Source of the DNA: Monocercomonoides exilis PA203
Lineage: Eukaryota; Protista; Preaxostyla
Length of the DNA stretch: 64,000 nucleotides
Assembly: GCA_001643675.2 (NCBI GenBank)
Contig: LSRY02000007.1
Location: forward strand, 434,001-498,000
Direction of reading: 5' to 3'
Both the position numbers and the translations under genes were made by a program. Positions 12,833-56,035 of the stretch are shown here, piece after piece; the stretch's first letter is position 1; the number at the start of each line of letters is the position of its first letter. The notes beneath the pieces were generated by a model. That model had not been told where the DNA came from, searched no databases, and saw only the letters and a list, made by a program, of their open reading frames with translations.

Positions 12833-14736
12833 CGGAGATATATTATTCAATTGGTTCACTCAAAAAAATTTCATTCTCAAAATCATGGGTAATTATTTTT
12901 GAAATTATGCTTTTTTCATTAAATATTTCCGGTTTGTCAATTTTGTTAAAACCTGAGTGACATGACAAATCATAAAAAACGATGTCAGTCAGCAACAAAT
13001 CAAAATCGAGGGACACTTCGTGTTGGAACCAACATCTTGGTGTATGATTCAATTGCTGTGTTTGAGATGAACAATTATCAAATCAATTTCGAACATATTG
13101 ACATTGAATATCCTGATGCTATTGAAGGAGATGCACTTAATATTGTATATGGCTCTTTTTATTTGAAAATGACTGATGTTTTGTTCAGGCCCTGGTACAC
13201 GGGCTTAAAAGGAGAGAATGCACTTGGCGGAGAAGGAAAGCCTTTTCCATACACGCTGATTACTTATGAGGAAGGAACTGGCGAAATCATCCAGTTGACT
13301 GTTCAAGGAAGAAATGGAAATATTACAAGAAACAGTCAAAACAACAACCAAATTCATAACAATAAATACTTTGAGAACATGGATGAAATGGAATCAAATT
13401 CTGGTTCAGAATTCAAAATTAATGAGGAAGATAATCCGTTGTGTTCGTGGGATTCTGGGCTTGTATTCCTTCGAGGATCTTTCCACACAAGCTTCGATGA
13501 CAGCACATTTTCTGATATCAGTGAGGGGGCTATTCTATCTTCTTCAACTGCTCTGAGCATTACGAATTGAAGTTTTATGAATAATCATCCGATTGGAGAG
13601 AATTGGGAGAAGTATTCTTCAATGAGGCACAACATCAGAATCTACTCAAAATCAGAGTTTAATTGGGCTTCTATCCACTCTTTGGCACCAGGAAGCGATG
13701 GATTGGACGAAAGGCCGTTTGGAATGGTTACCGAAATAAAGCCAATTGGAGCAGCTGCTGAGAACATGAATTCTTATTTCTTTTCGTCTATTTTGAAGAA
13801 CGTGACAATTGAGAAAGAGAACAAGAGCAATTTGAATGCAATGCAAAGTAAAGAAGGTGCTGAGAAGGAAGTCGAAGCAATTATTCGTTGAAGCTTTTTG
13901 TTTCCTTGTGGACTTTCATTTGAAGCATCCAAAAAAAAGAAAGGACAAGGAATGGAATGGAACGACTGCTCAATTTCGGAGTATGTGAATGAGACCGAAA
14001 TAAGAGTGAAGATTCCGCAGTCAATTTTTGATGTGGACGAGTACACATCTGTGATATGCCGCTTGTCTTATCCGAGTGGAGTGATAGAAGGAGAAAAGAG
14101 ATACTCTCAAAATCTTGTTTTGGAACATCAGAAGAAAGAGGATCCAAAAACATTAACATCCACTCAACTGATAATTATAATTGCATCGTCATGTGCATTT
14201 TCAATAATTGTTGTTGTTGCGATTATAGTGACTGCTGTTTGCATAGTCAAAAGGAAAAAGCGAAGACAATACAAGCCAATCAACGATACTAAATAGATGA
14301 GCGGATTGTGGCACAATTTTTCAAATCAGCATTTTTGATTCACAAAAATAACTTATGGAAAAATAACCGTGGCATGATGTATAGTCATTGAATGTTTATT
14401 GATTTTATTTTTGTAATTTGTCGATGAGATTGCATTGATTTGTTGTTATTTTGAAGATAAGCACCTGCAACATTCTTTTTCTCTTTAACATTTTTATTGA
14501 ATAATGGTTTTTTTCGATTTCAAGAAAATTACGTAATATTGCAAATTAATTTGCAAAAAGAGTTTTGTTTTGAATTTGAAGAGTGATTTATGTCAAATTT
14601 AATATAACATTTGTTTTTTTTAAAAAAGGAAATTCCATATTTTTTTGTATTTTTTCATAATTGTCATTTGAGAAATTATATTTTTTGTGATGATTTTCAC
14701 AGAAATGCGAATAACATTCAAATGCAACTTCAAAAA

Positions 14737-15095
14737 CCGTACATCGCCTAAAACACAAAACAAGATCGATTTCACAATAACTACAAGAGGAATAATTCTG
14801 AAAATTTTCCTCAAAAGATATCTCATCAATGTAAACTCATTTGATTTACAAAACTTTCAAAATAGCTTCATATGTGCTCAGAAAAAAAAATATCGAAACC
14901 TCAGAAAAAGAGGTTTTTGAGTTTCTCCGAGATTTTTATAAAAATTTTCTCTGAGCATAAACGAGGAAGTTTTGAAAGTCTCGTTTATCAGTTGAGTTCG
15001 TATTGATGAGATATATCTTGAGGAAAATTGTCAGAATTATTCCTCTTGCGGTTTTTGAGAAATCGATCTTGTCCTGTGTTTTCGGAGATGTACTG
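14737..15095. mobile_element. Palindromic MITE-like element (~360 bp), probably Tc1/mariner/pogo-type
   Basis: Diverged inverted arms: ccgtacatcgcctaaaacacaaaacaagatcgatttc.. vs ..gaaatcgatcttgtcctgtgttttcggagatgtactg, followed by TA. Confidence 0.75.
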
Positions 15096-15124
15096 TATTT
15101 TAAGCGATATCTGTATATTTTACG

Positions 15125-15618
15125 AAATACTTACTGAAACAATTTAAATAACATCTTGGTAGTAATTTTATATAACTGTAATATCTATAAGAGCAAGTGT
15201 TTGCTTTCGTTTAATGTTCTTGCATTTGATGAAAAAATTTTGTTTTAGTTGTCCCATTTGAAATAATTTTTCAAAAATGACAGATTTTCATTCCATTGGA
15301 AAGAGCTATTTGTGGAAAATAAAATTTAACCAAAATTGTTTATATCATGGAAAAAATAGGTTGAATGTGTAAAAGATGAATTGAATCGTGTTATTAAAAT
15401 AGAAAAATTCATCAAAAGTCGGATTTTCTTAAATAAAAATTATTTATTTCAAAAAAAAGACAACGCTGCTGTTAAAAATTCGGATATGAATCGATGTCAT
15501 ATATACTAATATATAACTATGCAATTTGCTGAAAATTAATATTGAATATTTGTTGAGATTTTTTATTTTTAAATTTTGTTCGGATGAAAAATTTTCTGGA
15601 TTAAAAAACCACCCTATA
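15125..15618. mobile_element. Old solo arm related to the 1.07-kb foldback element family
   Basis: Aligns with 40169-40610, e.g. aaaatgacagattttcattccattggaaagagc vs aaaatgacagattttcattccgttggaaagagc, and aaaatagaaaaattcatcaaaagtc vs aaaatagaaaaattcattaaaagtc. Ends in a different terminus (ccaccctata). Confidence 0.7.
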
Positions 15619-17863: not shown

Positions 17864-20800
17864 ATGAAAAAATCAAATGAAAATACCGAAGAATCGGATA
17901 TTTTTGATGTTGGATCTCTTTTCAATATAAGTTTGACATCTGGACGAACGGGAAAATTAACTGTATGCACAAACAATCCAGATGAACAACTTTGAATATA
18001 TTAATTTTTTCATCATATTAAAGTCTCCTTCTCAACGCAACTCACGTGTTATAGCTATGTCTTTAAAGGCTCCAGAAGTTGAGGATATTGGGCATCGTCG
18101 TGCACCAATGGATTTTGTATGTCTTGTTGATACATCAAAATCAATGGCAGGAGGATTTTCGCTACCTGGAAAAAATAAACTCGCGCAAGTTATGAGTTGT
18201 TTTCAGCATTTAATAACGTATCTAGGAGAACAAGATAGATTTTCAGTCTATCTTTTTGCATTGGAAACTAAAAAGTTATTTAGTCTTGTCAACATGGATT
18301 CTTTAAATAGAGTTTGCTCAATTTGAGATTTATTGTAGGACTTTGATTAATTTTGCTAAATTATTTTTTTCATTTGTTCATTTTAATCTAGTGGAGTGTT
18401 TCTGCAACTCTGTCACGGCATTGCTCGCAACCTGACGGTGGGACAAACATGCTAAAAGCAGTAGAGGTTGCACTTACTGAACTTTCATCACATGAAAGGT
18501 TAGAATTTAGTTTATTTATGCAATAATTATGTTGAAATAATGATGTTTTTTGAATGAAAAAATAATAATCGAAACAAAATATGTATATCTTAATGATGAA
18601 TAAAACTCATAGAACCGAGAATTGCGAAGGACGAGCAGCGTCAATATGGCTTTTTTCAGATGGAATGGACATGGTGGCGCGTGAGGCATGGGACAACGAT
18701 CTGCAACGCCCAACAGGAACACTATCTGATGAAGCACTAAGCAGAAAAATCAAACAACTGATAATGTCATTCGAAGGAAAGATAAAAGGTGGTTTTTCGA
18801 TCAACACATTCGGCTTTGGAGATCAAAACGACGACTTTCTGCTGAGCAAGCTTGCTGAACACGGGCACGGAACGTACTACTTTGTGGAAGGAACAGAGCG
18901 CCTGAAGCAGCAGGAGTCGTTTATCAGGTGCTTTGCGGACTGCCTCAACCGAAAGCTCACGCTGATTGCGCAGAGTGTCAAAGCGGAGCTGCAAGTGGGC
19001 GACGGAGCGCGAGTGGTGCGGCAGATTGGGCCGTGTGAAGACGAGCGGGCGGAAGTGGCTGATTTGGGGGATGTTTACCACGAGATGGTGTCGAATGTGA
19101 TGTGGGACGTGACAAAAGTGGAGAAGAAGAAGAAGAAGAAGGGCGTGCTGTCTGGGAAGTGGGCGGTGAAAGGGGAGGAGAAAGAAAGAGAAGATGAAGA
19201 TGATATGAAGGACTGTGAAGACTACGACGAGAACAAGCTGTATGTGGCTGTGGAGGTTGTGTATGTGAACTTGCTGGAAGGAGGGAAAAAACAAAGACAG
19301 ACGCAGTCACTTATGGTTGACTGGAGAGACGAAACAGTTTGCGATTGTTGCTTTTATTTGTTTTTGCTTTTTATTTTTATTTTATTTTTCTCTATATATT
19401 TAAAATATCCTTATAATAATGATTATTGTTGCTTAATCAATTAATAAATAAAAATTTATCATTTAATTATCTCTTCTTCATTTTAGTTATTGCCATCTGA
19501 TTTGCTTGCAGAGTATCATTTGACACTTCGAGTGCTGGCTGAAATAAGAGAAATGCGATCAAAAACACGAAGTGCATTTCCCTCAACTTCCACTCACCGC
19601 TCAGAAATATTGGGAGGATGTGTGCTTTCCATTGAAATGATTATTTGATTATTTAATTTTTAAATGTATTTTATTTTATCTAATCAATTCTAATGCAAAA
19701 AATATGTATTTATAATTATATATATATTTCATTTCGTTTCTAGTCTCCTCACTCCGCACCCGCTCCTTCGCAAACGCCACGAAAGCACTCCAGCGGCGCA
19801 CCCAGGCCACTCAACAGCAGATGATGAGAGAGTTCAACAAGATGGACTTGACAAACATTCCAGACGTTCGCCCTTTCGCAGCCGGCAGCGACCAAACAGG
19901 AAGATTCAACGGAATGGGGAGGTCTGCGGAATTTGTGGCAGCAGTCGAGGAAGAGATGGGGGGAATACTGAAAGCGTATGTGGGAGAGCAGAGCCTGCGA
20001 GTGAGAGGGGCGCTGCTGGAGCGGGAGAGGGAGATGAAGAAGGAGTGGAGGGAGATGCTGGCACAGTTTGAGAACGAAGGAAGGCGGATTTTTGACTCGG
20101 TGCTGGTGGGCGGGATGGCGCAGGTGCTGGATGAGATCACAGAGATGAGGAACAGAGGAAGGAGCGTGATGCGGGAGATTGAGATGATTGCAGCAGAAAT
20201 GAGAGACAGGAAAGAGCGGATGAGAGAGATGGAGGAGGAGATGAAGATGAAGCTGGGGTTGTTTGAAAGAAATGAAAGAGGAGAAGGGAAAATGGGGAAC
20301 AGAGCAATTTGCAGCGGGACGATAGCAAAAGGAGCGCTTCGGCAGATGCAGGCAGATGAATGGGCTGATGAGGATGGAGAAATACGGAGAAATTCTGCCA
20401 CTGTCAATGCAACATCTGCTTCATCTGCTTCATCAATGCACAATCGTAGCAATCTTTCCATGGAAACCTCACAAAAACTCGGTCAAACAACGCATTCACA
20501 ATTGAATGAAGGAAACGAGAACAACATTTGTGATTCAGATTATTATGAGCCGAAAAGAGAGGGAGAGCAGTCAGAACAGCAGGATCATCCAGAAGTGCTC
20601 TCAGAACAAGAAACATCTCCTTTGAATCAGAATCTGAATAGCTCATCCACTTCACAGAAGAAACAGAACTTGATGGAGATGTCTTCAAAAGAAGACACAT
20701 TTGCTGATGAAGCATATCCTTATTCATCATCACCATCCTCCTCCTCCTCCTCATCATCATCTTCATCGTCAACCTATTCTCCCTTAAATACTTATCCATT

Positions 20801-23800
20801 TCACCAAACCATTTCATCATCATCATCTCAATCAAATAATTCCTCATCCTTCCCCTTTTCCTCTTCCTCTTCTGATGCTGCCTCATCATTTTCATCCACT
20901 GCACCAGCCACATCATCATCATCACCATCATCATCACCATCACCATCATCATCATCATCATCTTCTTCTTCTTCTCCTCTTCCCCTCAACACATCCTCTC
21001 TCACCCAAACCCTCTCCTCGCTCAATCCAGGCACCTCTGACCAGCCCACTCCTCTTCTCCACTATGCCCTCTCGCTCGCTGCTGACCACCTCGACCACAC
21101 ACACCGGAGTGCCTACACAGCACGCGTGAAGGAGCTGAAGCAGCGGATGGAGCAGCAGCACAGCCTGTCGCTGAGAGAAAGCAGCGAGAAAGAAGAGCAG
21201 CTTCTGATGCGGATGGAGGAAAGAGAGCAGAAGGAGAGGATGCTGAGGGAGATGAACGAGGAGAGGAAGAGGCTGTTTGCGGGGCTGAAAGGGAGAGTGC
21301 TGGAGGAAGAGGCAGAAAGAATGAGGGAGTTTGAGGAAGAGAGGAAAGAATTGAAGAAGAGAGAGGAAGAAAGAGAGCAGATGGCTGAGCAGATGCTGAT
21401 GAAGGAGGAGGAAGACATTATGAGGCTGATGAAAGAAAGAGAAGAGGCGAAGCAAAGGAGGATTCAGAGACGGTTGAAGCGGATGAAATATCAGCAAGTT
21501 GCAGCTGAAGTCGATGGACAAACAGAAAATGGGAAGGAAAATGGAGAAAAACAGAATAAGAAGACGGCAAAGAACACAAATGCAAGAAAGCAGCCACGGA
21601 GCTATCAGCAGTTTAAACAAAGAAAAGCAGCAAAGAAGAATTTGAAACAAAAGAAAAACACACAAAATGGGAATGAAAACCAAGAAAATCCACTTCAAAG
21701 CAGTGGATGTGTTGCAATTGAAACAGAAAATGAGAGAGACTTTAACGACGAACAAATGAAAGGGTCTTCATCTACTCCTTCAAAAAAGTCCCGCTCATCG
21801 AGTTCTTCATCTTCATCTGCTTCAGCATCAGCATCTTCTTCATCTCCTTCTTCATCTCCTTTGTCTCAATCTTCCAGTTCATCTTCATCAAACTCCTCAA
21901 ACAACATATCACCCAGCACCGCACTTCAAACACCCAATTCATCTCGATTGGTTAAACCACTTCATTCTCAACCCACTTCATCATCAATATCACCATTTTC
22001 TTCTTCTTCTTCTTCTTCTTCTTCTTCTTCTTCTTCTTCTTCTTCTTCTTCTCAGGATCATTCAAATAATGCTTTGTCTGATGAAGACAATGATTCTTCG
22101 TTGAAAGATAATATGAACAACAACAACAACAATGATGATGATGAATATAATGATAACAACAACGAACAATGTGAACAATCAAAAGAAATGGAAGACGGAG
22201 AAATAAAAGGAAACAATGAAATTCAACTTAAAGAAGGGGATCTCTTATCATCGCCAAGACTGCAATCGACTTCACTTCAGCAGAAAAGAAGAAAAGCTCG
22301 TGAAATGCAGATGCTCAAGCAAGCACAGATGGCACAGAAGGACAACTTGGAATCTTCAAATAAAGAACTTAACTCTGATTCAAATAATCAAAACAACGAT
22401 GAAGTTAGCAATAAAGAAGACAGTTCAATGAACGGAAATGAAGGAATTTCAAACAGAAACAATGGAATAGTTGCAGACGATGAATCAGCTGATGAATCGA
22501 TTGTCTTTGGAGAAAGCGAAGGAATTGGACTGAATGAAAGAGAGCTCATTTTGGCTGCTCAGCTGATGGACGAGTCAGCGGAAGCACGAGAGAAGCAGAA
22601 TGCGAGTGAGACAGAGCAATTTGGAGAAGGGAAAACACCAAAGTCTTGGAAGACGAAAAGCAGAATAAGAAAAAGAGACAAGGGAGTGTTGAGAGATAGA
22701 GAGGAGAAAGACGAGGAAGGAGTGGTGCAACTAGATGAAAGCGAAGACGATATGGAAGAGAACGAAAGCGAAAGCACGCCTTTGCTGATGAAACACCAGA
22801 AACTTAGCAGCGGCACAGGAAAGCTTGAAGTGCAGAGTGGATATCGTGAGGATGCAGCTGAAGCAGAAACAGTTTATAAAAAGGGGGCTAAAAGACAAAA
22901 GATTATTGTCGACACAAAAATGTCTCAGTTGCAGAAAGAAGCAGATGCTAAAGAGGAAGAAGATGATGATGACGAAGACGAAGATATTGACGATATAAAT
23001 GTATTTAACTCTCTTCCAGAATTAGAGAGAAAATCCAGCTTGTCGAAAAAAGAGAGAGAAATGCTGAGAAGAGGAGCTGGAAAAGGCGGGCTGCCTTCTG
23101 AAACAGAAGGAGAAATGACAGATGAAGAATATCTCAAGCAAGCAGCAGGATTTGATGACGATGATGACGATTCTGTTTTGATGGAATCAACAGCTGAAGA
23201 AGAGGATGAGGAGCCTTATGACAAGGAACAAAACAAAAGCAGGAATGCACAAGCGGATGATGACTCTCAAACAACGGGTGTGTTCCGCTTCTGGCGAAAG
23301 AACGTGACACAGTCCACTTTGGGCACAGTTCTGTGTGTTATCTTCAGTGTTGTGTTTCTTCTCTTCTTCATCGCAGGAGTGGTTGTATTCTTTGGCCTTC
23401 TCTTTGGAGGATCGCTTCTCTCCTTCTCTGGCGTCATTCACCCGGCTGGCAATGCTGGGCTTGCTGTTGGCCCTGCTGTTGAATGGAGCAGTGCAAGCAG
23501 TGTTGCGGCTGCAGCTTTAAGCGGAATTTCGCTGCCTTTCATTTCATCTTCGTCACATCATCGTAGTAATGATTCACATCATTCATATCAGAACTCCACA
23601 AACACTTATTTTGAAGCAACAAATTCAAGGAAAGGCAAACCTTTTAAATCTTCCAGGTCTTCTTCGTCGCACAACATGCTTGAAGTGACTGACTCTGCAG
23701 TTTATGCGCACACTCTTTATGCCTCTTTTATAAGTGCAGATCTTTTATCAGCAAAGTCGCAAACATTTGGAAACAAGATTGTTGTTGGCAATTTGTCTTT

Positions 23801-24944
23801 TGATGGAGAAAATCAAACAATAACAGGTTTGAACTCCACCATTCCATTGCATTTGAGAACAGATGGTACAACACAAGTCATATCTCCTCATACAGTTATT
23901 AGTGATCCATCTTCTACGAACTTGCAAAGCGTAACCCAGTTATTCACTGTGGATGGGACGATGTCGGTGAGGGGGAATGCGACGTTTGGGGAGAGTGTGG
24001 AGGCGAAGGATGTGCGGGCATACAACTCGACTGTGCTGCGGGGGAGTGTGCGGGTGGAAGGGGAGACGCACTTTGTGGGGAAGACAGTTGCCGAGGGGGA
24101 TGTTGCAGTGGAAGGAGTGCTGAGTGGGAAAGATGGGACATTCAGTGGGGATGTGAGTGTGGCAGGGGAGGCGAAGCTGAAGAAAGTGCGAGTGGAGGCC
24201 GGGGCGAGTGTGGAAGGAGGGTGTGTTGTTGGAGGGCAGAGTGGGGAGGAAGCGCTGAGAGTGAAAGGGAAGAGTGTGCTTGAAGGGGGGAGTGAGGTTG
24301 GAGAGTGTGGAGGGAGTGGAGGAAGTGTCGGGAGTGGGCTGAGGGTGTGTGGGCGGAGCAATCTTGACTCTGAAGTTGTGATTGGGAATGAAACAACAAC
24401 AGCAGCAGCAACAGGAACAGGAACAGGAAACAGTGACACAACACTTCTTGTTGTCAACGGGAAGGCTCAATTTAATGGTGATGCAACATTTGGCAATCAT
24501 ATTGTGTCTTCCCAGCCAGTTATTCATTCCATTCAATCAGAAAGAACACTCAATTTGATTCCATCTTTGATTGTGACAGTGATCAATGAAGGACAAGAAA
24601 TGCATTTTGAGATTCATAATCTTCCAGACGAGTTCTCTTTATTTGTAGACGACATCATTTTCCAGTCAATCAGTCTGTTTCGCAACTACATTCGCTTCAC
24701 AAGAACAGCAGGAAATGATCCTCAAGCCAATTCCACTGCAACAGATACAGCTTTTCGATGGAACTGGAGCAATCACATTCTTACTCTGTCATTTACAAGC
24801 ACTGCGCAAAGATTTATAAGAGCATCCCTTTCTTCATTTGAAGCTGTGGATGCTGTGAAAGTTGTCCTGCGTTCAGAAACATCTGTTTCGAAGACTAATG
24901 GAAATGATGAAGATAATAGCACCATTATATACAGACACTTATAA
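17864..24944 (+). CDS. vWA domain + coiled coil + TM + beta-fibre-like protein, paralogue A (~2183 aa)
   Basis: Exons 17864-17962, 18024-18311, 18392-18498, 18613-19336, 19487-19619 and 19744-24944; all introns GT-AG and frame-consistent. MIDAS motifs VDTSKSM, GGTNM, LFSDG, INTFGFG. TM VLCVIFSVVFLLFFIAGVVVFFGLLFG. Gly/Val-rich beta repeats lie C-terminal. Confidence 0.85.
21998..22050 (+). repeat. (TCT)n microsatellite encoding poly-Ser
   Basis: Uninterrupted tct run inside the coding exon. Confidence 0.9.
23946..24473 (+). repeat. 528-bp coding inverted repeat, arm 1 (176 codons, TVDGTM...GKAQF)
   Basis: Reverse complement of 26586-27113. The protein and the alternative-frame translations are identical between arms, and identity stops abruptly at both ends. 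Confidence 0.95.
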
Positions 24945-25668
24945 CAAAGGATTCATTATTTTTGATGGATTTTTTGATGACTTATATTTATTTCTTTTCG
25001 TGTTAGAAAAATATTATATTCATAGCAATTCATCTTTTTGTTTTAAATGCGAAAGTTTTTATCTTTTTGTTTCGTATTGTTCATTTATGTGTGGTTTTAT
25101 TAGCAATAATATTTACGTGTATTTTTAAGTTGAAAATATATTCGTTTTTTTAAAAAAAAACTTTTTTTTCCAAAAGAGTATGCTTAATCATTGTTTTTGT
25201 TCTTAAAAAAAGATTTTCACAAATTGTGAAAATTTCTCCATTGAACAAAAAGAAACACCAAACGTTAACGTTAAAATTCAATGCTCTTATCGCTAAAAAT
25301 GAAGAATTTGAAGGAAACAAAATGATATTTTTCATTTTTCAAACATAAACCACTTTCCATTAACTAAAATTTAAACAAAAAATTAGAGTGAAATGAAATG
25401 TATGCTGAAATGTGTGAATGAAAACGAAACTACCAATAAATTTAACTTAAAATACAAAATAAGATGAATAATAAGCTAATACAATCACCATATTTATAAG
25501 ATTAAATACAATAAATACAACATAAATAGAAATAATATCCAATTTTATAATTTTAAACCGAAAAAAATTTTTTATTAATAGGAGATAATAAATACTTTCA
25601 TTTCTTGCCTTCTAGCAATGTCTCACACATTTCTATCAACTATCCATTCAGCTGAAGGATAAACAAGC

Positions 25669-28600
25669 TCAACCATTAGCTGCCTTCACTTCATTAGAAG
25701 ATGTCCCAGAGTGATTTTTTTCATCTGTTATTTCGATTTGTTCAGGATCTCCCTTGACAATTGTCGCAGTCAGAAATGTCTTGCAATCTTTGTCCATTGA
25801 ATAAGTGCATCGAAAGTCGCCTTCAGGTTGCTCAGTGCAAGTCAGATGCCCAACAATTTGGGAAGCAGAAACTGAAAATCAGAAGTGAATAAAAAGTGGT
25901 GTGAAAGAAAATAATCATATTTCAGAGAAAATATTTATTTAAACATAAAGGAAAATACATTCTTCATTTGCAAAAATTTCAAAATTCCAATCAGAATCAA
26001 GTAACACTTTCATTCAATTCACAAATATAACTTTCAACTTTCACCAGAAATCTCTCACATACTGCAGACTGCAGTGCCATTGTCAATAACCCACGTTTCC
26101 TCTCCTTTCTGATCCGGCTCAATAAAAACAGCCTCCAACATTATCGTCGTGTTTGTCAAGTTCCCCTTTATAATAGTCGTATTTTCAATCTGCCCTTCAT
26201 CAAAGAAAAAGCACGGATGATATCGCCCTCCAGCAAGACTCGTCTTCTGCTCCATCTTCACCTCCTGCCGGAATAACACAGGTCCATCAACAACAAGCGC
26301 ATACTGCGAAAGATCCGAGGCATTTCCGCTCCCTGCTTGATTTGATTGAATGTTTCTCTTTTCTCTATTGATGGCTTCAAAATCGATATTTCTTTTGCAT
26401 TTACTATAATCATGAGCGTGCTTTGTAAAGAAATCATTCTCTTTATTCACATTTGTATTTTTATGTGTTGAGCTTTGCTTTGATGAATGCCCATCTGCAA
26501 CATTCGTCAAATAAGTCGTTCCATGAACTGTCAACGATCTTGCTCCTGTTACTCTACTTTGTGCATCAATCACAGTTGGTCCTGAAAATTGAGCCTTCCC
26601 GTTGACAACAAGAAGTGTTGTGTCACTGTTTCCTGTTCCTGTTCCTGTTGCTGCTGCTGTTGTTGTTTCATTCCCAATCACAACTTCAGAGTCAAGATTG
26701 CTCCGCCCACACACCCTCAGCCCACTCCCGACACTTCCTCCACTCCCTCCACACTCTCCAACCTCACTCCCCCCTTCAAGCACACTCTTCCCTTTCACTC
26801 TCAGCGCTTCCTCCCCACTCTGCCCTCCAACAACACACCCTCCTTCCACACTCGCCCCGGCCTCCACTCGCACTTTCTTCAGCTTCGCCTCCCCTGCCAC
26901 ACTCACATCCCCACTGAATGTCCCATCTTTCCCACTCAGCACTCCTTCCACTGCAACATCCCCCTCGGCAACTGTCTTCCCCACAAAGTGCGTCTCCCCT
27001 TCCACCCGCACACTCCCCCGCAGCACAGTCGAGTTGTATGCCCGCACATCCTTCGCCTCCACACTCTCCCCAAACGTCGCATTCCCCCTCACCGACATCG
27101 TCCCATCCACAGTCAGCTTATCTTCCACACGCAAATCATCCATTTGCACTTCTGCTGCTTCGAACAAGATCTTATTTGGCGCTCTTATCACTCCATTACC
27201 TTCGGTCCATTGGAGCGCATTACCACTTTTCATAGTCCCGTTAAACACCCCAGGTAAGTTGAGGCCTTTGATCTCGTATTCTCCCATGTCGATGTGCGAG
27301 AGAAAAGTGATTGTGTTTGAAGGCTGCGATGAATGGGCAGACAAGGAAGGAACAGAAAGAGTGGAGTTGATAGAAAGAGTAGAAGAGGCAGCTTGTGAGC
27401 GGACATAAGGCTTTGAGAGAGAAGATTTGGGAAATGAAGGTGTTGATGCATACGAATGAAATGCTAAGACATTTGACAAGGAAATGAAAGAAGAAAAGAG
27501 GGTGTTAATAATTCTTCTTAAAGAAGAAAAAGAATGCGAAATGAAAGAAACGAAAGAATTGAAATAACTTATCCGATTTTCAGGAAGTGTATTTGTAAGA
27601 GTTGTTTGTGAAGTGATGTCTTGTTGATGTGAAGGATGATTTTGCTGTTCTGCTTCTCCAATTTCTTTGAAAGAAGAAGAACGTTGCTTAAATTCAGAAG
27701 GATGAGAAGGATGAGAAGAAGAAGAGAAAGACGAAGAAATCCAAGTTGAAGTGGTTGATTTAATATCCAAATGATTATAACTTGAAAGTGTGTGCATACT
27801 ATTTCCTTTTGTATTTGAAGTAGCTGCAGAAGCAGCCCCTCCTCCTCCGCTCACATCAAAAGCGACGCTTCCACCGCCTCCAGAAAGAGTCAACGGCTTC
27901 TTCAGCTGAAGTGCTGAGCCGCCGCTGAGGAGATTGCCAGAGAACAGCAGAGGAGCAGCACATATGAATGCAACAAGAGAAAAGAAGAAGAGAAAGAACG
28001 CAACAATTGAGAACACGATTATGATGGGCAGATGCGAATGTTTGCTTGGCTCACCTTTATTTTCAGGCTGGGCAGAAGAAGAAGAGGAGGAAGAGGAAGA
28101 GTTGGAAGAAGAAGAAGGCTGTGCTTGACCTTCTTGTTGCTGGCTGCTTTGTGCCAAAGGTGACGATGACCCCTCACTCGCCAAACTAGTTGAAGATCTA
28201 CTCTTTTTTCCCTTTTCTGAAGTACTGCCATTTCTGCTATGACCACCTGAAGCAGTTCCCTCTTCACTGCTGCTGCTTTCTTCTGCCTCGTCCATCCATT
28301 CGTCTCCATCCAACAGCACATACTCTCCCTCTTCCACTCCCATCCCTCGCCTCTCATTCCCATCACTTCTGTCTATTCGCTTCTTCTGCTTCCCTTTCTT
28401 CTGCGACAGCTTATTCACCACTCTGTTCCCATCACTGCTAAATGACACATTCTCTCTCTTTGTCAGTCCCATCCCCTTTTGCACTGCCATCTTCATCCTC
28501 TCCACTTCTTCGATCGAATCCAGCGTTATCTTCCTCATCCTCGAAATCCAGTCATTCATCAGCATCTTCAGCTCCATCTCATTCCCTTCTCTTTCCTCTT

Positions 28601-29799
28601 CCTCTTCTTGTTCTCTCTCCAACCTTCTCTCAATCAGCTCCAGCCGTTCTTCTCTAATCACCTTCTCTAATTCCTCCCTCATCTCGTCTCTCATCTCCTC
28701 CTTCAGCCCTTCTGCTGCCTCTTGCACAATCTCTTTGTCCAGCTCTGCCTTCATCTCGTCCACTGCATCCAGAAGTTGCTCTTTCAGCTCCTCTCTCACC
28801 TCCATCTTCAGCTCTTCCTTCATTTCCTCTTTTATTTCCTCTTTCACCTCCTCTTTCACCTCTTCTCTCACACTATCCTTCAACTCCTCCTTCATCTCCT
28901 CTTTCATCTCCTCCTTCAGCTCATCCTCCATCCTCTCACACATCGCATCTGCTGCCATCCGCACATTCTGCTCAATGACCAGTGGAGGTTTCTCTGATGA
29001 CAGAACACTCGCAATCGCTGCACCCAGCTCCTCTTGTGCTGCTGGGGAAGAAGCAATGGCGGAGGAGATTGGTGAAAGAGACTGTGAATTACGAGAGGGA
29101 GAAGGAGAAGGCGAAAGAGAAGGAGAAGGAGAAGGAGATTGGAGCGAACGAGGGGTGAGCAAGGCAGAGCGGTGGCGGTGCGAATGAGAGTGTGAGTGAG
29201 GAGAACGAGGCGAGTGGTGTGTGCGAGAGAGAGGCTGGTGATATGGATTGGTGGAAGACAAGGAATACAGAAAGGGCGAAACAGTCGAGGGATTCGCAGA
29301 GGTGGAGGTGAGGGTGGATGAGAGGGTGACGTGGGGAGGGAGACGAGGGGTGCGCGCGGAAGGTGGACGAGTGGCAGATGAAAATGCTATTAAAAAAATA
29401 AAAAGAGAAAGAAATAAAAATTTTTAAAATTAAATATATTAAAAAAAAAATGATTGAATGCAAATATCTTCAAAATATCGCACACCTTTTCTTTCTTCCT
29501 CCTGCTGCTTCTTCAGTTCCTTGAGCAAAGTCAATTCTTCGTGTGCATTCGGCAGATACTTTCCCGCAGCCATTGATTTTTCCTCTTTCAGTTCCAACTG
29601 TTTCCTCTCATCCATGTGCTTGATGACTCTTTTTGTGAGCTTTTCGATTTCTGCATTGATCGGGTTGTTTGTGCTGTTGAACATCGGATTGTTCCACGGG
29701 GAAGGATGAGCAGGAGACGAAGAGAAAATGGAAGAGGCTGAAGAGGCTAACGATGAACGAGAAGGAGAAGTTCGTAAAGAAGACTCAGAAGCAGAGCCA

Positions 29800-29830
<31 letters not shown>

Positions 29831-32048
29831 TTGGTGTTGAGTCATTCAAAGACGACCGAGTCGAAGAAAGCGAGGCAGTCGAACTGGAAGAAGTATTCAT
29901 CGAAATCGGCACGAATGTCTCCACTCCATCAAACTGACTTCGCGAAAGCATAGCCAGCCCGCCAGCACGCTGGTGCTTTTGGCTCAGCTTCTGCTGGCGG
30001 AACTTCATTCCAGCGATGCGCTTGATGCATGCCATCTGCTGGGTGATGGATTCCGCACGCTCGACGTCCGTGAGAAGAGGAGAGGTTGGCGACTGGAATG
30101 ATATGATTGGTGAATAAAAAGTTGTTAGCATTTCCAAATTATGAATAAAGAAATAAATTTGAATTTAGTTGTTTTGAGAAGTAAAACAAAAATATTAGAA
30201 CAAGAAAAGAAAAGAAATAAAAGAGCAAAAAAAATTTATTATTATTAAGAATAGAAAAAAAGAGTCATAGCTGTCTCAAAATCACACCATCATCTCCATC
30301 TGATTGAAATTGTATGAAAATTTCACTGAAACTGGCTGGAAAGGCCGAAGCGTCGCTGGATCGATCGAATACATCGTCAGCGTCCCATTCAGCACAGACA
30401 CTTCTGGGCGCTGCAGACAATCACTCACCGACGATGATGTTGTGTTTGGTGCTCCATTGAAACCAAGGGGCGGAACAACCTTAAACAGCACTTTCTGCTT
30501 CAGCCCTGAGTAAAAATCTCCAATTGACACACGAAGAATATCTTGCTCGCTGCTGTTTTGCTTCTCATCTTCATATTTCTTCTCCAACTTCCCCTTTTCC
30601 TCTTCCCATGCCTGCTCATTTCTTTTCCCTGTTGAACCAAGCGCACTCTTCTCTCCTTCATCTCTCCCTTTTCTCTCTCTGTTGATCACTCTTTCTCTTC
30701 CCACCACGCCTTCGATTGTCCACCCGCCTTCCAGCGCAATCTCACACACGCCGTCGACGACTGTGCAGTTCTGCTTCTTCACCAGCGACTCGCAAACAGA
30801 CCTCACAAACACCCCTTCTGTGTCGATGAAGTAGTAGTTGCCCTTTCCCGCTGTGGCAATTGCTGACAGAAGAACATCGTCGTGATCCACTCCAAACCCA
30901 AACGTGAAAAGACGCAAAAATCTCCGCTTCTTCCGAGACGCAGAAGGAGAAGTTGATGCTGTTGATGTGACGGAGCGTGCAGAAGGGGAATAATGAGGAG
31001 TTGTTGGAATAGAAATGTTTGAAGCAGGAGGCGAAGATGAAGGTGATGATGGAGGAACAGATCCTGCTCTGGGAGAGGATGCATTCTTTCCATCCATCCG
31101 CTCTTTGCCCCTGCGATATTCTATTTCAGGAACGATATATTCATCATTCCATAAATTTTCGCAGACGCTTCGCCCTTTCAGAACTTTCCACAGTCTCGAA
31201 TTGACTGCGTCCATTCCATCTTCAATGCGCAGAGATTCTCCTCGCGAGCCAAACTCAGTTTCTTTGTGTGCTCCATCGTCTATACCATCACTGAATAGCC
31301 ACACATACATATGGCGCACTCCTCCGATTCCATCTCTAATTATGTTAGGTTCGAATAATAAATTTTTAGGAAAAATATTTTTCAAAAAATATTTTGAATT
31401 CAACTTTTCGAAAACTTCACACTTTTCACTTTCTGACATTAAATCCAGAGCAGCACCAATGCCTTCCAAAATGTTCGTTCCACCCTGTGGCTTTTCCGTA
31501 AAACTCATTAAGCGACGAATTATAAGTTCCTAATTAAATAAAAATTGAATGCAAATGCTTGAAAAACTAATAAAAGTGTCATTAATACTTTGCTTTTTAG
31601 TGTCATAAAAGTTGGTTCAATTAAAGTTATCGGCTTTCCAGCAAAAAGAACTAATCCAAAACGATCTTCATCCTCTAACAAAGTTATGACTTTTTCGAGA
31701 CATATTAAAACCTGACGAAGTTTAGAACTAGTTTTATAAAATTAAAATAAAGAGAATCTCAATTTCAATTAATTAAAGAAGATACCAATCTTTTGAGAAA
31801 AAATCATTTCCCATGCCTTATAAAATGCAATTCATAACGAAGATATTAAAATAAAATTTAAAAACAATACTTGAACTAAAATCAACTGCTGCAATAAGAT
31901 CAATAGGAAGCTTTTTACGAATTTTTGGAGAAATAACATTAGCTGCAAATCCAGCTGAAAGATAAAATTCATTATCTCCTCCTTTGGGCCAAGAAGTACT
32001 TTTCATATAACCAGCATCTGTGGTCAAATTTATGAATGAGTTATTCAT
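25669..32048 (-). CDS. vWA domain + coiled coil + TM + beta-fibre-like protein, paralogue B (~1878 aa)
   Basis: Exons 32048-31871, 31816-31786, 31727-31589, 31529-31423, 31335-30288, 30092-29486, 29386-26063 and 25871-25669; frame-consistent GT-AG introns. Motifs VDFSSSM, GGTNI, LFSDG, LFTFGFG. TM IIIVFSIVAFFLFFFSLVAFICAAPLLF. Confidence 0.85.
26586..27113 (-). repeat. 528-bp coding inverted repeat, arm 2
   Basis: Reverse complement of 23946-24473, in the coding frame of paralogue B. Confidence 0.95.
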
Positions 32049-32254: not shown

Positions 32255-35200
32255 ATGAAGTTGCGCAATCAAGTCAAAAAACCGTATGCTAATTGTGTTA
32301 GTCGTTTTTATCGATGGAACAGACCGGCTGGTGGAAAAGGTTTTATCTTGTTTTTCATTTCATTCAATTATAATATTTGAATGGTATAGAGCTCCTGCGA
32401 CTTGCTTTTCCAATGATACTTTCTGAGGCTTTCTTAATTATTGTTTTAATTTTCTTTTTTTATTAATTATACGTTTTCTTTCAGGGTTCAAATGTGATCA
32501 ACGTTTTTGTTGAAAGGATTATTTTAAGTAAATATACTCCACCAGGGAGAGAAATTGGTTCAGAAGCAGCTGCTGTTTCTGTTGCCTGGAGTACAGTTTC
32601 TGTGTTAATAAGTCTTGCACTTGGTGTTAGCATATATGGGGCAATTGGAATGGCTGCTGCTGTTGGAGAAGAGTTATTTAATAAAGTTGGAGCCGTCCTT
32701 TGGCAAACACTTTATGCAGCAGTTTTAGCAGCAGGACTCCTTGCAGCTTTAATTCCTGCAATACGTCCGCTTCTTGGATTTATGTCGAATATGGAAGATT
32801 CTGGCATTTTATATCTTTTGGATACGGAAGTGCGCTATGCAACAATAATATTGAGTTGTTCCATATTCTTTCTTCTATACGACATTGGTTCAGGATTGTT
32901 TGCTTCCATGTCAAAAACAGCTCCAATTATCTGTGTTAATCTGATATGTCTTGGAACAAATATTCTTCTTGACTATTTGTTGATTATTGTTGGGAAGCTT
33001 GGTGCAATCGGAGCAGCCATTGCAACTGTGTGTAGCAAGGTGCTTGGCAGCGCTATATTTATATTTCTTGCGGTCCGTAAAAAGAAAATACGAACAGATT
33101 ATTCCTTTTTTTCGAAAAGATCCATGATTCCTGTGTTTAAGACAATTTTCCGCTTTTTCTTCTTTGGGCTTGCTGTTGGGCTTGTGAATTGCCTGGATGA
33201 TTTGGCCTGGACATTGTTTCTTTTGCTGAACCAGTCTGTTGGCGAGATTGAGGTTACAGCTGGTGGGTATGCGTCTTCCGTGCAGGATTTGGTGGGGCTG
33301 TTTATATTCGGTATCTCATCTGCCGAAAAGATCATTTGCTCAACTTACATCGGAGCTGGAATGCCTTCACTTGCACTGCGTGCACTTGCTGTGGTGTTCA
33401 AATGCACAGTTCCATATGGGCTGGTGATTTCAGCGCTTTACTTGGCAATTCCTCGGCAGCTAATGTCGATTTTTGTTGAAGAAGGCACTTTCTCTACAGA
33501 CGAGTATTTTGAGTCTGTGATGAAGATGGGGGAGATGATGATGCGGCTGCTGGCTGCGTATTACTGGCCAGACATGTCCATGTACTGCCTCACTGCTCTG
33601 CTCCAAGCAGCAGACAAAACATCCATCCCTCCAATTTCCTCAGTGGCTGGTCTTGTCACGTGCTTCATCATACCCACAGTTGTCATCTCTGTTGTCAGTT
33701 CGAAGAATGAAGTTGTTGCTTCTCTTTCGGCATCTGCTTTGTCGCTGCTGCCTTCTTCTTTGGCAAATTCTGTTTCAAATGTTGCAACAAAAGCATCAAA
33801 TAGCTTTCGTTCCATAGGCAAATATGCAACTTCTTGTTTGAAGCACATTCCATTCCTTCATCACTTCTTGTCAGCTGCCTCTTCCGAAGCAGCAGAAGAA
33901 GGCGGGGAACTGGAAGGCGATGATGGAGGGCTGGGGATAAAAGGAATGAGTGGGCTGGCGACTGTGCTGATGCTGATTGCCTTTGTGACAGTTCGTATTA
34001 TTCCTCTGATTGTTGCTGTGTCTTGTGGGAATTGGAAGAAGAAGTGTCTCGAGTGGTATGCAAAGGAGGTGGCAATGCAGCAGAAGGCACTGGAAGACGA
34101 GGAGGACGAAGATGAAAATGAAGATGAAGATGACGAGGATGAGGATGAGGAAGAGGACGAAGAAGAAGAGGAGGAGGAGGAAGAAACAGAAGAAGGCGGA
34201 GAAGAAGAGCAATTGATGCAGAAGAAAGCCAAGAAATCCGGCAAAACGAAGAAGAAAGGGCGAAAGAAGCGATCCAAAAATGGGGAGGAAGAAGATGAGG
34301 GAGACGAAGAGGAGAAAGCAGAGCTGCAGAGATTGATGGGGGAAGTGCTGATGGAAGAAGGAGAAGACACTTCGACTTCAGCAGAGACAGAAACAGACAA
34401 CAGCAATACACAGCAGATGGAAAGTGTGAAAAAAGACGAGTCAGGAAAGAAGAAGAAGAAGAAGAAGAGAAAGACAATCAAACACAAAAAGAAGAAGAAG
34501 AAGAAGAAGAAGAAGAAGAAGAAATCCAAAAAAGCTAACAAAGATGAGGCGCCTCCTGAGGATTTGTATGGATATTTAGGTGTTTCTGCATCTGCTTCTG
34601 TCACTTCATCAGATTCTTCGTCTTCGTCGAGCGATGGCACTTCAAAGAAGGAAGAAGAAGAAGAAGGAGAGGAAGAAGAGGAAAGTGAGGAGGAAGAAGA
34701 AGACGAGGACGAAGAGGAAGAGGAAGAGGAGGATGAAGAGCAAAAGGAAGGAAAAGGGAAAGAACACGAAACATCCAAAGATCAAATGCTTTCAGAGGAA
34801 TCAACAAAATCTCAGGCGTCTGACATGCTTTCGCTTGTGCGTTCGACTCCTTCCTCGCATCCTCAACTCATCTCATCCAAATCATCAGCCTCACTTCACT
34901 CTTCAGCCACATCGCATTCCACTTCTTCATCCACCACACCTCATCACACACCTTCGTCTTCCTCTTCTGGTGCTTCTCCACCTGCTTCTGCTTCATCCAA
35001 GCCTTCCTCCCGCACTTCATCCAGATCTTCTTCTTCCTCTGCTTCAAATCAACTTCCAAACTCCACTTCAATTCTCACTCCAACTTCTCTCTCCCCCTCA
35101 CGTCAGTCATACCGCTACCCCTTTTCTCCTTCCTCTCCTTCGCCTTCTCATTCCTCTCTCGCTCTGCCTGCTGCCCCACGCTTCACTCAAATGCAGCCAG

Positions 35201-38200
35201 CGCCGCCTCGCCAGCACTCTCCTTCACTCCACTCACTCCATTCTATCCGCTCAATCCACTCCACACACTCTCTCCACTCACAGCGCAGCTCGTCCAGTTT
35301 GAGCAGCAAGTGGCTGAAACGCAATAGAGAAATGGAGCTGAAAGGGAGTGCTGCGAAATATCAGGTGCTTGATGACAACGACATGGGTGAAAAGGCAGCA
35401 GGGACGAGTCTTGTTGAAGAAAGAGAGGAGAGGAGAGGAAGTATAGCAAGTGGATATGATGTGAATGGGGAAGGAGGAGAAAGTGCATCTCATGTGTTTC
35501 TGTCTCCTGCTCCTCGAAGATCTGCCACGCCATCTTCATCTGCATCTGCCTTTGCTGCCGTCCACTCACCTGCTCCATCAACAGCATCGTCTCCTTCCTC
35601 TCACTTGTCATCTTCCTCCTCTTCTTCCTCTTCTTCACCAATGACACCATTTCCCTCGCCAAATGTGCTTGCCCAGCTGCCGCCAGAGTTTGAGCCTACA
35701 TTTCAGCCAGACAACAAGCTGAACCACCCACCGCCTCCAATCAGATTGAGGAAGAAGAAGAAGAAAGCAATTGGAACAGCGACATCTTCGCTGGATGCTG
35801 CTGGAGGAGTGACCGATCAACAATCGGAAGTGCGGTTTGCTTTAGCTGCGAATTCCCCATCATCATCTTCATCGTCCTCGTTCTCATCATCATCCTCCTC
35901 AAAACAACCACCCATTCCTCCTCCTTCTTTTGTGCCTGGTCCTCGCGATGAGACAAAAAGCTTTGATGATTATGTTCTTGTCTCATCCATGGCAACTCCC
36001 ATGTCTTCTTCTTCCTCATCCTCTTCTTCTTCTTCCTCTTCTAATCCATCAGCTGCTTTACTCAAGAAACCGCTGAAGCGACCAATTGACGATGAAAGAA
36101 GATCGCTACGTTCATTGAAAGGTCAGCCATCTAAGTTTTCTGCTTCTCCATCATCGTCATCATCATCTTCTTCTTCAGTTGCTCCTTCTCCTTCTCTTTC
36201 GTCGCTTCTCTTCAACTTCCGTGGAGGTGTTGGTCATTCATTAGGAAAAGCATACGAGAAGCAAATGGAAGGGCTTTTGAAAGAGAGAGAGAGGAAAAGA
36301 GAAGAAAAAGAAAGGAGAAAAGAAAAAGCAAGCGAAATTGGGCGAGTTCGAAGCAATTTGCAAGCGTCGTCGACGCGAAGTGAGGAGAAAATGAGGCTGC
36401 AAAAAGGAGAAGACGGAAGAGTGGCGATTGAGATGAGGGAGATTGGAGAGGATGGGAGTGTGGTGGGAGGAGGAAGAGGATTCTATGAAGAGGAGGGATA
36501 TGGTGGTGATGGCATTGATGGCGGGGCTGATGATGATAGCAGCGAAAATGAGTCAGACGATGAAGATTTTGCAGAAAGGAGGCGGATGATAGCAGAAATT
36601 GAAGCGCGAGAAAGAGAGAGGAGAGAAAGAGAAAAGAAAGAGAGGCGGTTAGAGATGAAGATTATCAAGCAGAAGATGAAGGAGAGCCAAACGAACGAGG
36701 AAGAGAAGAAGATGATGAAGCGGCTGCGGGACATGACACCTGAAGAGCGGGAGAAGTGGAGAGAGGAGAAGAAGAACGAGATCAGAGAGAGGAGAAGGAT
36801 GCAGAAGGAGAAGACAAAGAGACAAAAACGGAGGATGTATGGAATGGCCGACGATGCGAAGAGTGTTGGCGATGAAGCTGAGCAAACGGGAAGGAGTGTG
36901 ATGGCAGCTGCGAACTATCCACACATGGGTAGCTTGGCAGAGTCAACATCGCCCAATCAGATTGGAGTGCATTTGGTGTCAAAGCGGCCAGGCTCAAAAG
37001 ACAACAGAGTGATCAATCTGGACAGTGTTGCACAACAGAATTCTCTGTCTTCTCAGTCTGATGCATTGGCATATCAAACACATCAGTCAAACCAAAATAT
37101 CAATGGAATATCTTATAACAACAATTCTTTTGAAAACAATACATCTGCTCCATTTCTGCAGTCATCTTCGAGTGAATCATCATCTTCTTCTTTTTCTTCT
37201 TCCCCATCTCATTCCCACTCAGCTGCTTCACCTCAGCACAATCCATCTCTTTCTTTCTCTCCAGCTCCAACAGACTCGCCTTCATCTGAGCTGTCTTCTC
37301 CTTCTCCCTCTTTCTCTCCCTTGCACCCTCTCTCCTCTTCTTCCCAGTCAGTCCCGCCTCCTCCAATCACACTCAGAAAACGCAAAGGCAAAAAAGGCAA
37401 GCTTCCAGGGGTATCACAAACAGCAGAGACATCCACAAACAATAACCTCTTACACACAACAGAGCCTTCTGCTAATCACTCCAGCAATGCTCCTCATCCT
37501 CCTCCATCCCGCTTCGACTTCCAACAACCTCAGTCGCGCTATCCACGCTTCGAAGAGTCTGTCTCGTTTGCCAGCTGGTCAGGCGACGACAGCGAAATGA
37601 AGCAGCGCAGGCTGTTTGAGTGGGAGCACGAAATGGCTCTTCTTTCGGCTTCTCCTCCAACACAACCTCTCTCTCCTTCTCACACCCAGCCCTCTTTACA
37701 CCAATCTCCACATGTTGCGAGCGATCCAATGAAAGTGCGTCAGCCGTCTTTGTCTTTGCCTCACTCGCGCCTTGCCTCGCTTCCTGTACCGCACCCGTCT
37801 CCTCCTTCGCATTCTGCCCAATCGACACAATATTCTCTTTCGTCTGCTTATCCGTCGCAGGCTTCTTTTCACACAATGACTGCACATTCTTCTTCACTTT
37901 CGAATGTGTCTGGGTCAGATGCAGATAATCTTGTTGCTTCCACTCAAAAGGCAAACAAGACAGATGCAACAGATAGTACTCTCCTTGAACCACTCGATGG
38001 AACAATGCCTGATGCTTTCAATGACATGATGCCTGCTAATTCTCCTCGCTCTTCTTCTTCTTCTTCTTCTTCTTCTTCTTTGCCTCCTGCAATTGTCGAT
38101 GTTATGACTTCTGTTTCGAGTGATACGAATGCAAAAGCAACGGATTCAAGTTCTTCTTCGTCGGAAATTCACACAAGTGAAGAGATGTTCAGTGACAGAT

Positions 38201-39141
38201 CAGCAGATGCTTTGAATGACACTCCTTTCACTTCTGGAGAAGACGCAGCATCTCAGCAACAGAAGAAAGAGGAAGCAAATGCTATTGGAGCGGAAGTTCA
38301 TTCGAATGAATCGGATAATTTTGGTGAAAATGCAAAGAAAACAGAAGAAGATGAAAGTCGAAAGAGAGAAGTAGATATGTTTGAGCATTTACCAGAAACA
38401 AGTGACAATAATTCAAATGAATTGAAAGGGGAATCACTTTCCGAAGTACCTCAAGAAGCACAGTATCAGCAAAGTTTCATTAAAGGAGGAAGAGAAGGAG
38501 GAGGAGAATTTACTGACTCTGGTGAAATAGAAGGAGGGATGTTTGAAGAACAATTCATTTCTCCACAGGCCAACGAAGCTCAAAGAGGAAGAAGTGATGA
38601 TGATGATGGCGATGCAGCGTTGATGGCAGATACTCAAATGTTCTACTTGATGGGTGATGCTGGATTGGATGGTGTGGGAGAAGAAGGAAGGAGAGACGAT
38701 GAAGATGACACTGCAGGAGTGGCAAGCACAGAAGCAGAGGGCAAAACCAAAGAAGATCAAAATGATGAGCGATGGGAAGGCGAAGGCGAAGAGAAGAAAA
38801 ACCATTCAGCACAGAATGATCCAGAGTCTGTCGCAAATAAGCATGTGCTTGCATATTTACCGTTTGAGTCGCTTGTGCATTTGTATGAGGCGACATCTGA
38901 TTCGCCTCCACTGACACCAGAAGAGGAGGAAGAGCGGATGTGGGCACAGCAAGAAATCGAGGAAGGGGACGAATTTGCTGATAGCGATAAGGCAGATAAT
39001 TTTACTTGCGTAGAAGGAGCAAGCGAGGATGATAAAAGCGAGAATCGTAAATCAGTTGGATCAAGTCGGAATGAAAGTGGAGTGATGCACAAGGAAAGAG
39101 AAGAAGAAGAAGAAGAAGAAGAAGAAGGTGGAAACAGATAG
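32255..39141 (+). CDS. MATE-family (MatE) transporter with a ~1700-aa low-complexity C-terminal extension
   Basis: Exons 32255-32339, 32390-32427 and 32485-39141. Motifs ELLRLAFPMILS, NILLDYLLI..GKLGAIGAAIATV, STYIGAG and multiple TM helices. The tail is poly-E/K/S/P rich. Confidence 0.85.
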
Positions 39142-39595
39142 CTTAAGCACTCTTATGTTTATATTCCCATTTGACTGATTGAATATTGTTTTGCAATTTG
39201 AATTTAAGTTTTATAACGGTAGCATTTCATGTTCAATAAACTGTAATTTTTTTATTCTTTTTTTTTTGTCTGGATTTTTTTCAATCTAATTTTGGAGCAA
39301 AGAGAGTAGTTTTCCATCTTTTTTTGTCAAAATTTGCGGACAAAATAGTTTTTCCTTTGTGAAAGTTATATGTTTTTTTCAATATTATTCATCATTATTT
39401 TGAAATTCTCAAATTTTTGGAAATGTTATGCTTTTTTATGTTTTCTCATTATAAAGCCAATCGTTTATTTCTTAGAATTTCATATGTTTGTCTCAAAAAA
39501 GTGAGCGCATGTTGAAATATTCGCAACTTATTTATTGTTCAGTTTCAAAAAAATGACAATTTAAAGTTTATTATTAAAGAAAGGTATTTTTTAAT

Positions 39596-55946: not shown

Positions 55947-55975
55947 ATTTCGTGTTAACATGGAGCAAAAAAAAG

Positions 55976-56035
55976 GAAAAAGAAAAGAAAAGAAAAGAAA
56001 AGAAAAGAAAAGAAAAGAAAAGAAAAGAAAAGAAA
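55976..56035 (+). repeat. (AAAAG)n microsatellite
   Basis: Tandem pentamer run seen directly. Confidence 0.9.

Follow-up and report, generated by a model that had tools for sequence, protein, structure and literature searches.

An identical in-frame inverted block in two convergent genes of Monocercomonoides exilis: probable homogenization by recombination, with a possible exchange of protein tips

Introduction

In the gut protist Monocercomonoides exilis, two convergent genes, here called A and B, carry one and the same block of 528 nt within their coding sequences, in inverted orientation with respect to each other and close to their 3′ ends. The question raised by this locus is whether the two copies form a working switch, through which inversion of the intervening segment exchanges the C-terminal ends (tips) of two predicted membrane proteins, or whether they represent a tract that recombination has made and kept identical in two otherwise diverged neighbours. 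The stretch considered is a window of 64,000 nt (assembly GCA_001643675.2, contig LSRY02000007.1, positions 434,001 to 498,000 of the forward strand), within which all coordinates below are counted and in which positions 15669-42006 equal the MONOS_708 locus base for base. With a probability of roughly 60 %, we judge that the 528-nt tract has been homogenized by homologous recombination, in the form of gene conversion, and that, as a passive substrate, it would also permit rare inversions by which the tips change places. Beginning with the block itself, the sections below consider the divergence around it, its reality in raw data, its composition, the consequences of a crossover and, lastly, its likeness to systems known from phages, bacteria, yeasts and another metamonad.

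The block shared by genes A and B

The genes and the two copies of the block (arms) are laid out as follows, X1 and X3 being sequencing runs described further below.

17864-24944, plus strand: gene A, with an annotated product of 2183 aa (gene call of GCA_001643675.2 mapped onto the window); its last exon is the open reading frame (ORF) 19821-24944
25669-32006, minus strand: gene B, which is MONOS_708, 1836 aa; the database protein, named by NCBI, is 100 % identical to the window translation
23946-24473, plus strand: left arm, 528 nt, codons 1376-1551 of the last exon of gene A; a 528-nt contig of its own in X1, with 0 substitutions
26586-27113, minus strand: right arm, the same 528 nt in the sense of gene B; covered in X3 by a contig (26586-27514) running from the arm into the body of B, with 0 substitutions

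According to the repeat finder, the arms are 100 % complementary over all 528 nt and lie 2112 nt apart, and they constitute the longest perfect inverted repeat of the window. Both genes read the block in frame, as 176 identical residues of ORF 19821-24944 (plus strand) and ORF 26055-29261 (minus strand), so that repeat finder and translations agree with the original prediction, which had described an identical block of 176 codons. With 0 differences among 528 nt, synonymous sites included, the divergence between the arms is below 0.57 % (95 % upper bound). Both edges of the identity fall on codon boundaries, although the chance of this is about 1 in 9 and it is therefore not significant. At the protein level the block is a Gly/Val/Glu-rich repeat block, and G makes up 45 % of its DNA. 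Tandem repetition was considered as the origin of the block and ruled out, since it contains only two internal tandem arrays, both of them short.

Divergence of the two genes outside the block

When the 600 nt flanking each arm are aligned, DNA identity drops from 100 % to noise at the first base beyond the block, on both sides. Similarity is likewise not significant in local protein alignments scored against shuffles, whether of the 100 aa that precede the block in A and B (z = 0.4) or of the two tips (z = -0.2). The earlier statement that the genes barely align elsewhere thus holds for flanks and tips, which are unalignable, but not for the N-terminal parts resembling von Willebrand factor A (vWA) domains, which are weakly homologous (E = 5e-8, approximately 44 % identity over 50 aa); a weak VWA_3 match is also present in ORF 18581-19441 of gene A. 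Moreover, the two proteins have the same order of parts, i.e. a vWA-like N-terminus, a Glu/Lys-rich region resembling a coiled coil, Ser-rich low complexity, one hydrophobic span, a Ser-rich stalk, the block and the tip. The hydrophobic spans are as follows.

23316-23411, plus strand: predicted transmembrane segment of gene A, from the translation read by eye
27942-28034, minus strand: predicted transmembrane segment of gene B, from the translation read by eye

Basic residues are found on the N-terminal side of both spans, which under the positive-inside rule makes an extracellular position of stalk, block and tip probable. Judged by their sequences, A and B are old paralogues that carry one very young shared tract, the youth of the tract following from the lack of any difference among its 528 nt inside such old paralogues. 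Two of the features by which gene conversion is recognized are seen here, as the genes are paralogous by their common domain order and by N-termini that align at E = 5e-8, and the tract is far more similar than the rest, synonymous sites included (0 of 528 versus unalignable flanks).

Elsewhere in the window, a direct segmental duplication of about 4.5 kb (2-4473 versus 47229-51703, spacing 47,230 nt) is 82-93 % identical in pieces, and some duplicates of the region are accordingly not homogenized.

Reality of the repeat in raw data

Perfect identity between two arms calls for a consideration of how the assembly was made. It was built with Canu from Oxford Nanopore Technologies (ONT) reads with an N50 of 8.9 kb. 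Polishing relied on Nanopolish and on ten Pilon rounds with PCR-free MiSeq 2x300 reads, a process that according to the authors works unevenly or poorly in multi-copy regions (PMC8767320). Public runs were available as Logan contigs (k=31), eight runs containing the stretch, and the k-mer contigs of four of them were placed on 22900-28200: X1 (MiSeq), X2 (indel-prone, probably ONT), X3 (2016/454-era) and X5 (RNA). These contigs end at the arm boundaries and so carry no linkage across the 528-nt repeat.

X1 has the block as a contig by itself, exactly 528 nt long; the contig of the A body stops 30 nt inside the left arm, that of the B body begins 30 nt inside the right arm, and the whole segment between the arms is one contig (24444-26615) that touches both. 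All four junctions (A body to block, block to A tip, B body to block and block to B tip) are present at single-copy depth. A genuine inverted repeat whose four junctions are all real should produce just such a contig graph. In addition, the DNA contigs of X1, X2 and X3 and the RNA contigs of X5 contain the same block with 0 substitutions, and the X3 contig that joins the block to 401 nt of the B body has a depth of 8.44 versus about 5.5 in the flanks, which fits two copies. The depth in X1 behaves otherwise; there the block contig stands at 132 versus 90-101 for its four single-copy neighbours, i.e. about 1.4-fold and not twofold. Sequence-specific errors in the G-rich block may be the cause of this shortfall.

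The original prediction had itself named an assembly or polishing collapse, concealing arms that differ, as a result that would undo it, and the recovery of all four junctions and of an unaltered block in four runs goes the other way. For the arms truly to differ, or for only one of them to exist, Canu correction and ten rounds of Pilon must have made them identical. The heavy polishing, the authors' own warning on multi-copy regions (PMC8767320), the 1.4-fold depth in X1 and the capacity of contig building to conceal 1:1 variants lend this account some substance. Nevertheless, the block forms its own contig with single-copy junctions, the depth in X3 fits two copies, and ONT reads with an N50 of 8.9 kb span the entire 3.2-kb structure (PMC8767320). 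Furthermore, the four runs, which comprise three technologies plus RNA, are identical to the assembly throughout the block, an outcome that is very unlikely if about ten hidden 1:1 variants had been resolved randomly in each run. An artefact is consequently very improbable, and the repeat is taken as real in what follows.

The RNA contigs of X5 cover the A body, the block, the A tip together with about 170 nt of 3′ untranslated region (UTR), the spliced B tip and the B body, with none over 25201-25554, and genes A and B both appear to be transcribed.

Gene conversion or a single transfer

Recent or ongoing gene conversion, which the original prediction had offered as the alternative to a switch, is favoured by the identity of the block within unalignable flanks, by the paralogy of the genes and by the lack of a recombinase domain in the long ORFs of the window. 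We infer that a break in one arm would be mended with the other arm as template, at a distance of 2-3 kb, conversion running over the only stretch in which A and B stay alike, such that one copy would recently, and probably repeatedly, have overwritten the other, and identity would end where homology ends. Some of these events would resolve as crossovers and thereby invert 24474-26585, exchanging the tips; inversion would then be a low-frequency by-product and not a dedicated or regulated switch. Metamonads are reported to be without Ku and DNA-PKcs, and homologous recombination is thought to be essential for their repair of double-strand breaks (PMC8516963); because of this reported lack, it is probably their main route of break repair.

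In its synonymous codon usage the first part of the block is unlike the upstream flank of either gene. At four-fold sites, the proportion of G is 0.69 over the first 390 nt of the block (23946-24335), where that of C is only 0.04, and 0.27 over the last 138 nt, which are already like the flanks; it is 0.13 in the upstream flanks of both A and B, 0.15 in the A tip and 0.33 in the B tip. The compositional jump coincides exactly with the left identity edge in both genes. Such a pattern points to the block as a discrete module to which the homology between A and B is confined. GC-biased gene conversion was tried as a sufficient cause of this composition and ruled out, since the rise in G is not accompanied by the symmetric rise in G+C that it would produce.

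The same figures bear on a further account, according to which a replication template switch, or another illegitimate event, copied the 528-bp module once, and recently, into the inverted neighbour some 2-3 kb away, in frame and with no exchange continuing thereafter. It draws on the razor-sharp edges, right beside which homology is detectable neither in DNA nor in protein, on the four-fold G usage of the block, which is remote from that of the A flanks (0.13 and 0.15) and somewhat closer to that of the B tip, and on the codons ending in A or T that A uses where the motif makes a further turn immediately behind the block. However, the jump at the left edge occurs in both genes, neither of which therefore looks like a seamless donor, and the common architecture of A and B leads one to expect a homologous module at that position. 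A copied segment would also be in frame at both ends only about once in nine times, and once the copies were identical, homologous recombination would act on them anyway. A one-off transfer is thus unlikely, though by no means negligible.

Several observations nonetheless weigh against homogenization by gene conversion as set out above. Gene conversion alone leaves the G-rich four-fold usage of the block (0.69 versus 0.13) unexplained, and the edges are without any graded partial identity, which a single recent copying fits at least as well as long-term concerted evolution. To these must be added the 1.4-fold depth of the block in X1 and the outcome of the protein and metagenome searches, which yielded no orthologue in any other species or strain by which concerted evolution might be traced phylogenetically.

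Consequences of a crossover between the arms

The segment between the arms consists of the following parts.

24474-24944, plus strand: coding part of tip A, 156 aa and stop; no family match; an RNA contig (24444-25117) spans tip A and about 170 nt of 3′ UTR
24945-25668, no strand: AT-rich intergenic spacer with both 3′ ends inside, from the sequence; RNA contig depth is zero at 25201-25554
25669-25871, minus strand: last exon of B, 67 aa and stop (25669-25671), the Cys-containing end of tip B; the frame 2 translation equals the end of the database protein, and a spliced RNA contig covers it
25872-26062, minus strand: last intron of B, 191 nt, GT..AG on the minus strand; the joint 25871/26063 is recorded in RNA run X5 as 'skips 191, CT..AC', and the database protein agrees
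26063-26585, minus strand: first part of tip B, 174 aa, adjoining the block; no Pfam match

The stop codons of the convergent genes are separated by 724 nt, and tip B amounts to 241 aa over two exons (26585-26063 and 25871-25672). The original prediction, which had seen in the 2112 bp between the arms only the two tips (156 aa for A, 241 aa over two exons for B) and the 3′ ends, was correct in these numbers, the B intron being borne out by RNA and by the database protein. The geometry is also as it had been stated, in that a crossover anywhere in the arms would invert 24474-26585 and yield two in-frame chimeras with exchanged tips. Neither chimera would be broken, since A and B read the block in the same frame and each tip would carry its stop codon and 3′ end along with it.

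Whether such inversions are frequent is another matter. A working flip-flop would mean that homologous recombination often inverts 24474-26585, with both orientations present in one culture and proteins of A body with B tip and B body with A tip being made, all without a dedicated recombinase. The perfect, in-frame inverted repeat of 528 bp, the presence of stops and 3′ ends for both tips in the segment and the apparent transcription of both genes would all suit it, and perfect identity is what frequent exchange would maintain. The probable predominance of homologous recombination in metamonad break repair (PMC8516963) and the existence in yeasts of regulated inversion switches driven by homologous recombination (PMC5720833) point the same way. 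Against it, no read, contig or transcript joining the junctions in the other combination came to light, contigs of k=31 being blind to it. The long-read assembly and the cDNA-refined gene models give one orientation, although they report the majority state only, and the X5 RNA contigs, which likewise break at the arm ends, are silent on chimeric transcripts. Neither a recombinase nor a nuclease was found nearby in scans of the long ORFs of the window. Recombination declines as repeats become shorter, and a 528-bp repeat should recombine less than a 4-kb repeat. Even the homogenized 4-kb inverted repeat of yeast kept its orientation through about 53,800 mitoses and 950 meioses (PMC9731477). Frequent flipping at this locus is accordingly quite improbable, and homogenization by gene conversion, with inversions that would be rare, is the reading retained.

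Were true flipping to occur, two differently built membrane-anchored bodies would exchange unrelated, probably extracellular tips, which would amount to combinatorial surface variation in a eukaryote reported to have no end-joining repair, and to a simple eukaryotic route for reshuffling the ends of surface proteins by general recombination alone. Without flipping, which is more likely, the locus represents a clean, small case of recombination keeping one module identical in neighbours that have otherwise diverged beyond recognition.

Recombinases, transposons and other repeats in the window

In Pfam scans of the long ORFs of the window, no recombinase, invertase, resolvase or integrase domain was found, which upholds the earlier remark that no recombinase lies nearby. 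The only mobile-DNA enzyme of the window is an IS1595/ISXO2-like DDE transposase ORF (11758-12399, minus strand, E = 3e-19), 12 kb away. An origin of the arms as the long terminal inverted repeats of a DNA transposon, located in coding sequence by chance, has one circumstance to recommend it, namely another perfect inverted pair of similar geometry in the same window.

56634-57001 and 60024-60391, no strand: second perfect inverted pair, with 368-nt arms 3022 nt apart, in a geometry resembling that of the 528-nt pair

This account, however, has next to no chance of being right. There is no target-site duplication at the arms, the flanks at 23945 and 27114 being different; the arms are in-frame parts of long ORFs that run on both ways into annotated, apparently transcribed genes; and the depth of the block gives no sign of further genomic copies. 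The missing target-site duplication and the continuous reading frames effectively refute it.

Other repeats of the window include a foldback element of about 1.1 kb, of which there are two 99 %-identical copies (39587-40671 and 53695-54699, 14,068 nt apart) with arms of 461-501 nt and a loop of 83 nt. Degenerate relatives of this element occupy 15268-15567, and there are smaller hairpins at 14701-15131 and 55573-56026.

Protein family of the block and the tips

For the extracellular parts of A and B, nothing above threshold was found in Pfam, and the block with short flanks produced only sub-threshold matches, to End_tail_spike (E = 0.007) and Bactofilin (E = 0.16). A sequence search of the PDB gave matches only at E of at least 0.5, scores in the Atlas feature search were at most 0.79, and two single-sequence AlphaFold models, with mean pLDDT values of 37 and 34, were too poor for use. 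In the protein searches, gene A was queried as single-exon references and gene B via its database protein. Word-index searches gave MONOS_708 itself as the sole match, whereas an exhaustive HMMER search of 1.84 billion representatives gave MONOS_708 and seven further proteins at E = 1e-6 to 1e-4. Several of these remote matches are bacterial trimeric-autotransporter or bactofilin-repeat proteins, and they are weak matches to a repeat motif, the remote matches having in common a repeated motif of the type V-x-G-T-x-x-V-x-G-x-x-T-F-G; one of them, a protein of 2217 aa from another assembly, repeats a motif that resembles the start of the block. A metagenome scan returned two loci, both short and weak. 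On the basis of the sub-threshold matches, a fibre-like beta-solenoid shaft is a reasonable lead for A and B, and the tips of both are, by these sequence searches, orphans.

The 2183-aa product of gene A was absent from the word-index and exhaustive HMMER results, despite its 176 identical residues shared with B and a length within the fitting range, and those protein collections apparently do not contain it. A neighbouring gene (32255-39141, plus strand) encodes a protein of 2259 aa with an N-terminal MatE transporter domain (E = 6e-23) followed by about 2000 residues without a family match.

Comparison with known systems

In the phage Mu G and P1 C segments and in the R64 shufflon, an invertible segment supplies a fibre or adhesin gene with alternative C-terminal parts, which are brought in frame with a constant part. 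These systems have recombination sites of tens of bp, an adjacent dedicated invertase and a single constant part with a single promoter, such that one variant is expressed at a time. The likeness to Mu and P1 claimed in the original prediction is borne out in geometry, but it goes no further, as the locus has coding arms of 528 bp in place of short sites, no recombinase in the window in place of a dedicated invertase, and two complete, apparently transcribed genes in place of one constant part. It is not a member of the Mu/P1-type systems. In the sap S-layer locus of Campylobacter fetus, inversion takes place by homologous recombination between conserved coding stretches of opposed paralogous surface-protein genes; there the conserved stretch is 5′-terminal and the invertible segment carries a single promoter, resulting in on/off expression. 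At the locus described here, by contrast with sap, the sequence in common lies towards the 3′ end, and what would be inverted is two tips with their 3′ ends.

Among eukaryotes, Giardia muris, another metamonad, has identical pairs of variant-specific surface protein (VSP) genes arranged tail to tail or head to head, for which recombination or gene conversion has been invoked; in those pairs whole genes are identical, whereas here identity is confined to an internal block of 176 codons and the tips are unrelated (PMC7641422). Inverted repeats driven by homologous recombination, as in Ogataea and Saccharomyces, are better analogues than Mu and P1. At the mating-type locus (MAT) of Ogataea polymorpha, a reversible inversion results from recombination between inverted repeats; unlike the present case, it is induced by nitrogen starvation, inverts 19 kb, moves the locus under centromeric silencing and creates no chimeric coding sequences (PMC5720833).

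The closest analogue found is the flip/flop inverted repeat of Saccharomyces chromosome XIV, in which homogenized inverted repeats of about 4 kb have changed the orientation of the segment between them repeatedly over evolutionary time (PMC9731477, Salzberg et al. 2022). One feature of such a locus, long near-identical inverted repeats, is present here as arms of 528 nt, 100 % identical and 2112 nt apart. As in M. exilis, the yeast repeat consists of paralogous genes in inverted orientation that are near-identical, there through continual homogenization, with one orientation in each assembly, and its inversion occurs by ordinary homologous recombination without a dedicated recombinase (PMC9731477). 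Unlike the M. exilis block, the yeast repeat comprises entire genes, with 24 kb of further genes between its copies, so that no chimeric protein arises on inversion; in yeast the segment is documented in both orientations. The locus probably belongs to a kind already known, the recombination-homogenized inverted repeat between paralogues, with the twist that its 528 bp lie inside two coding sequences, where a crossover would swap the C-terminal tips of the proteins.

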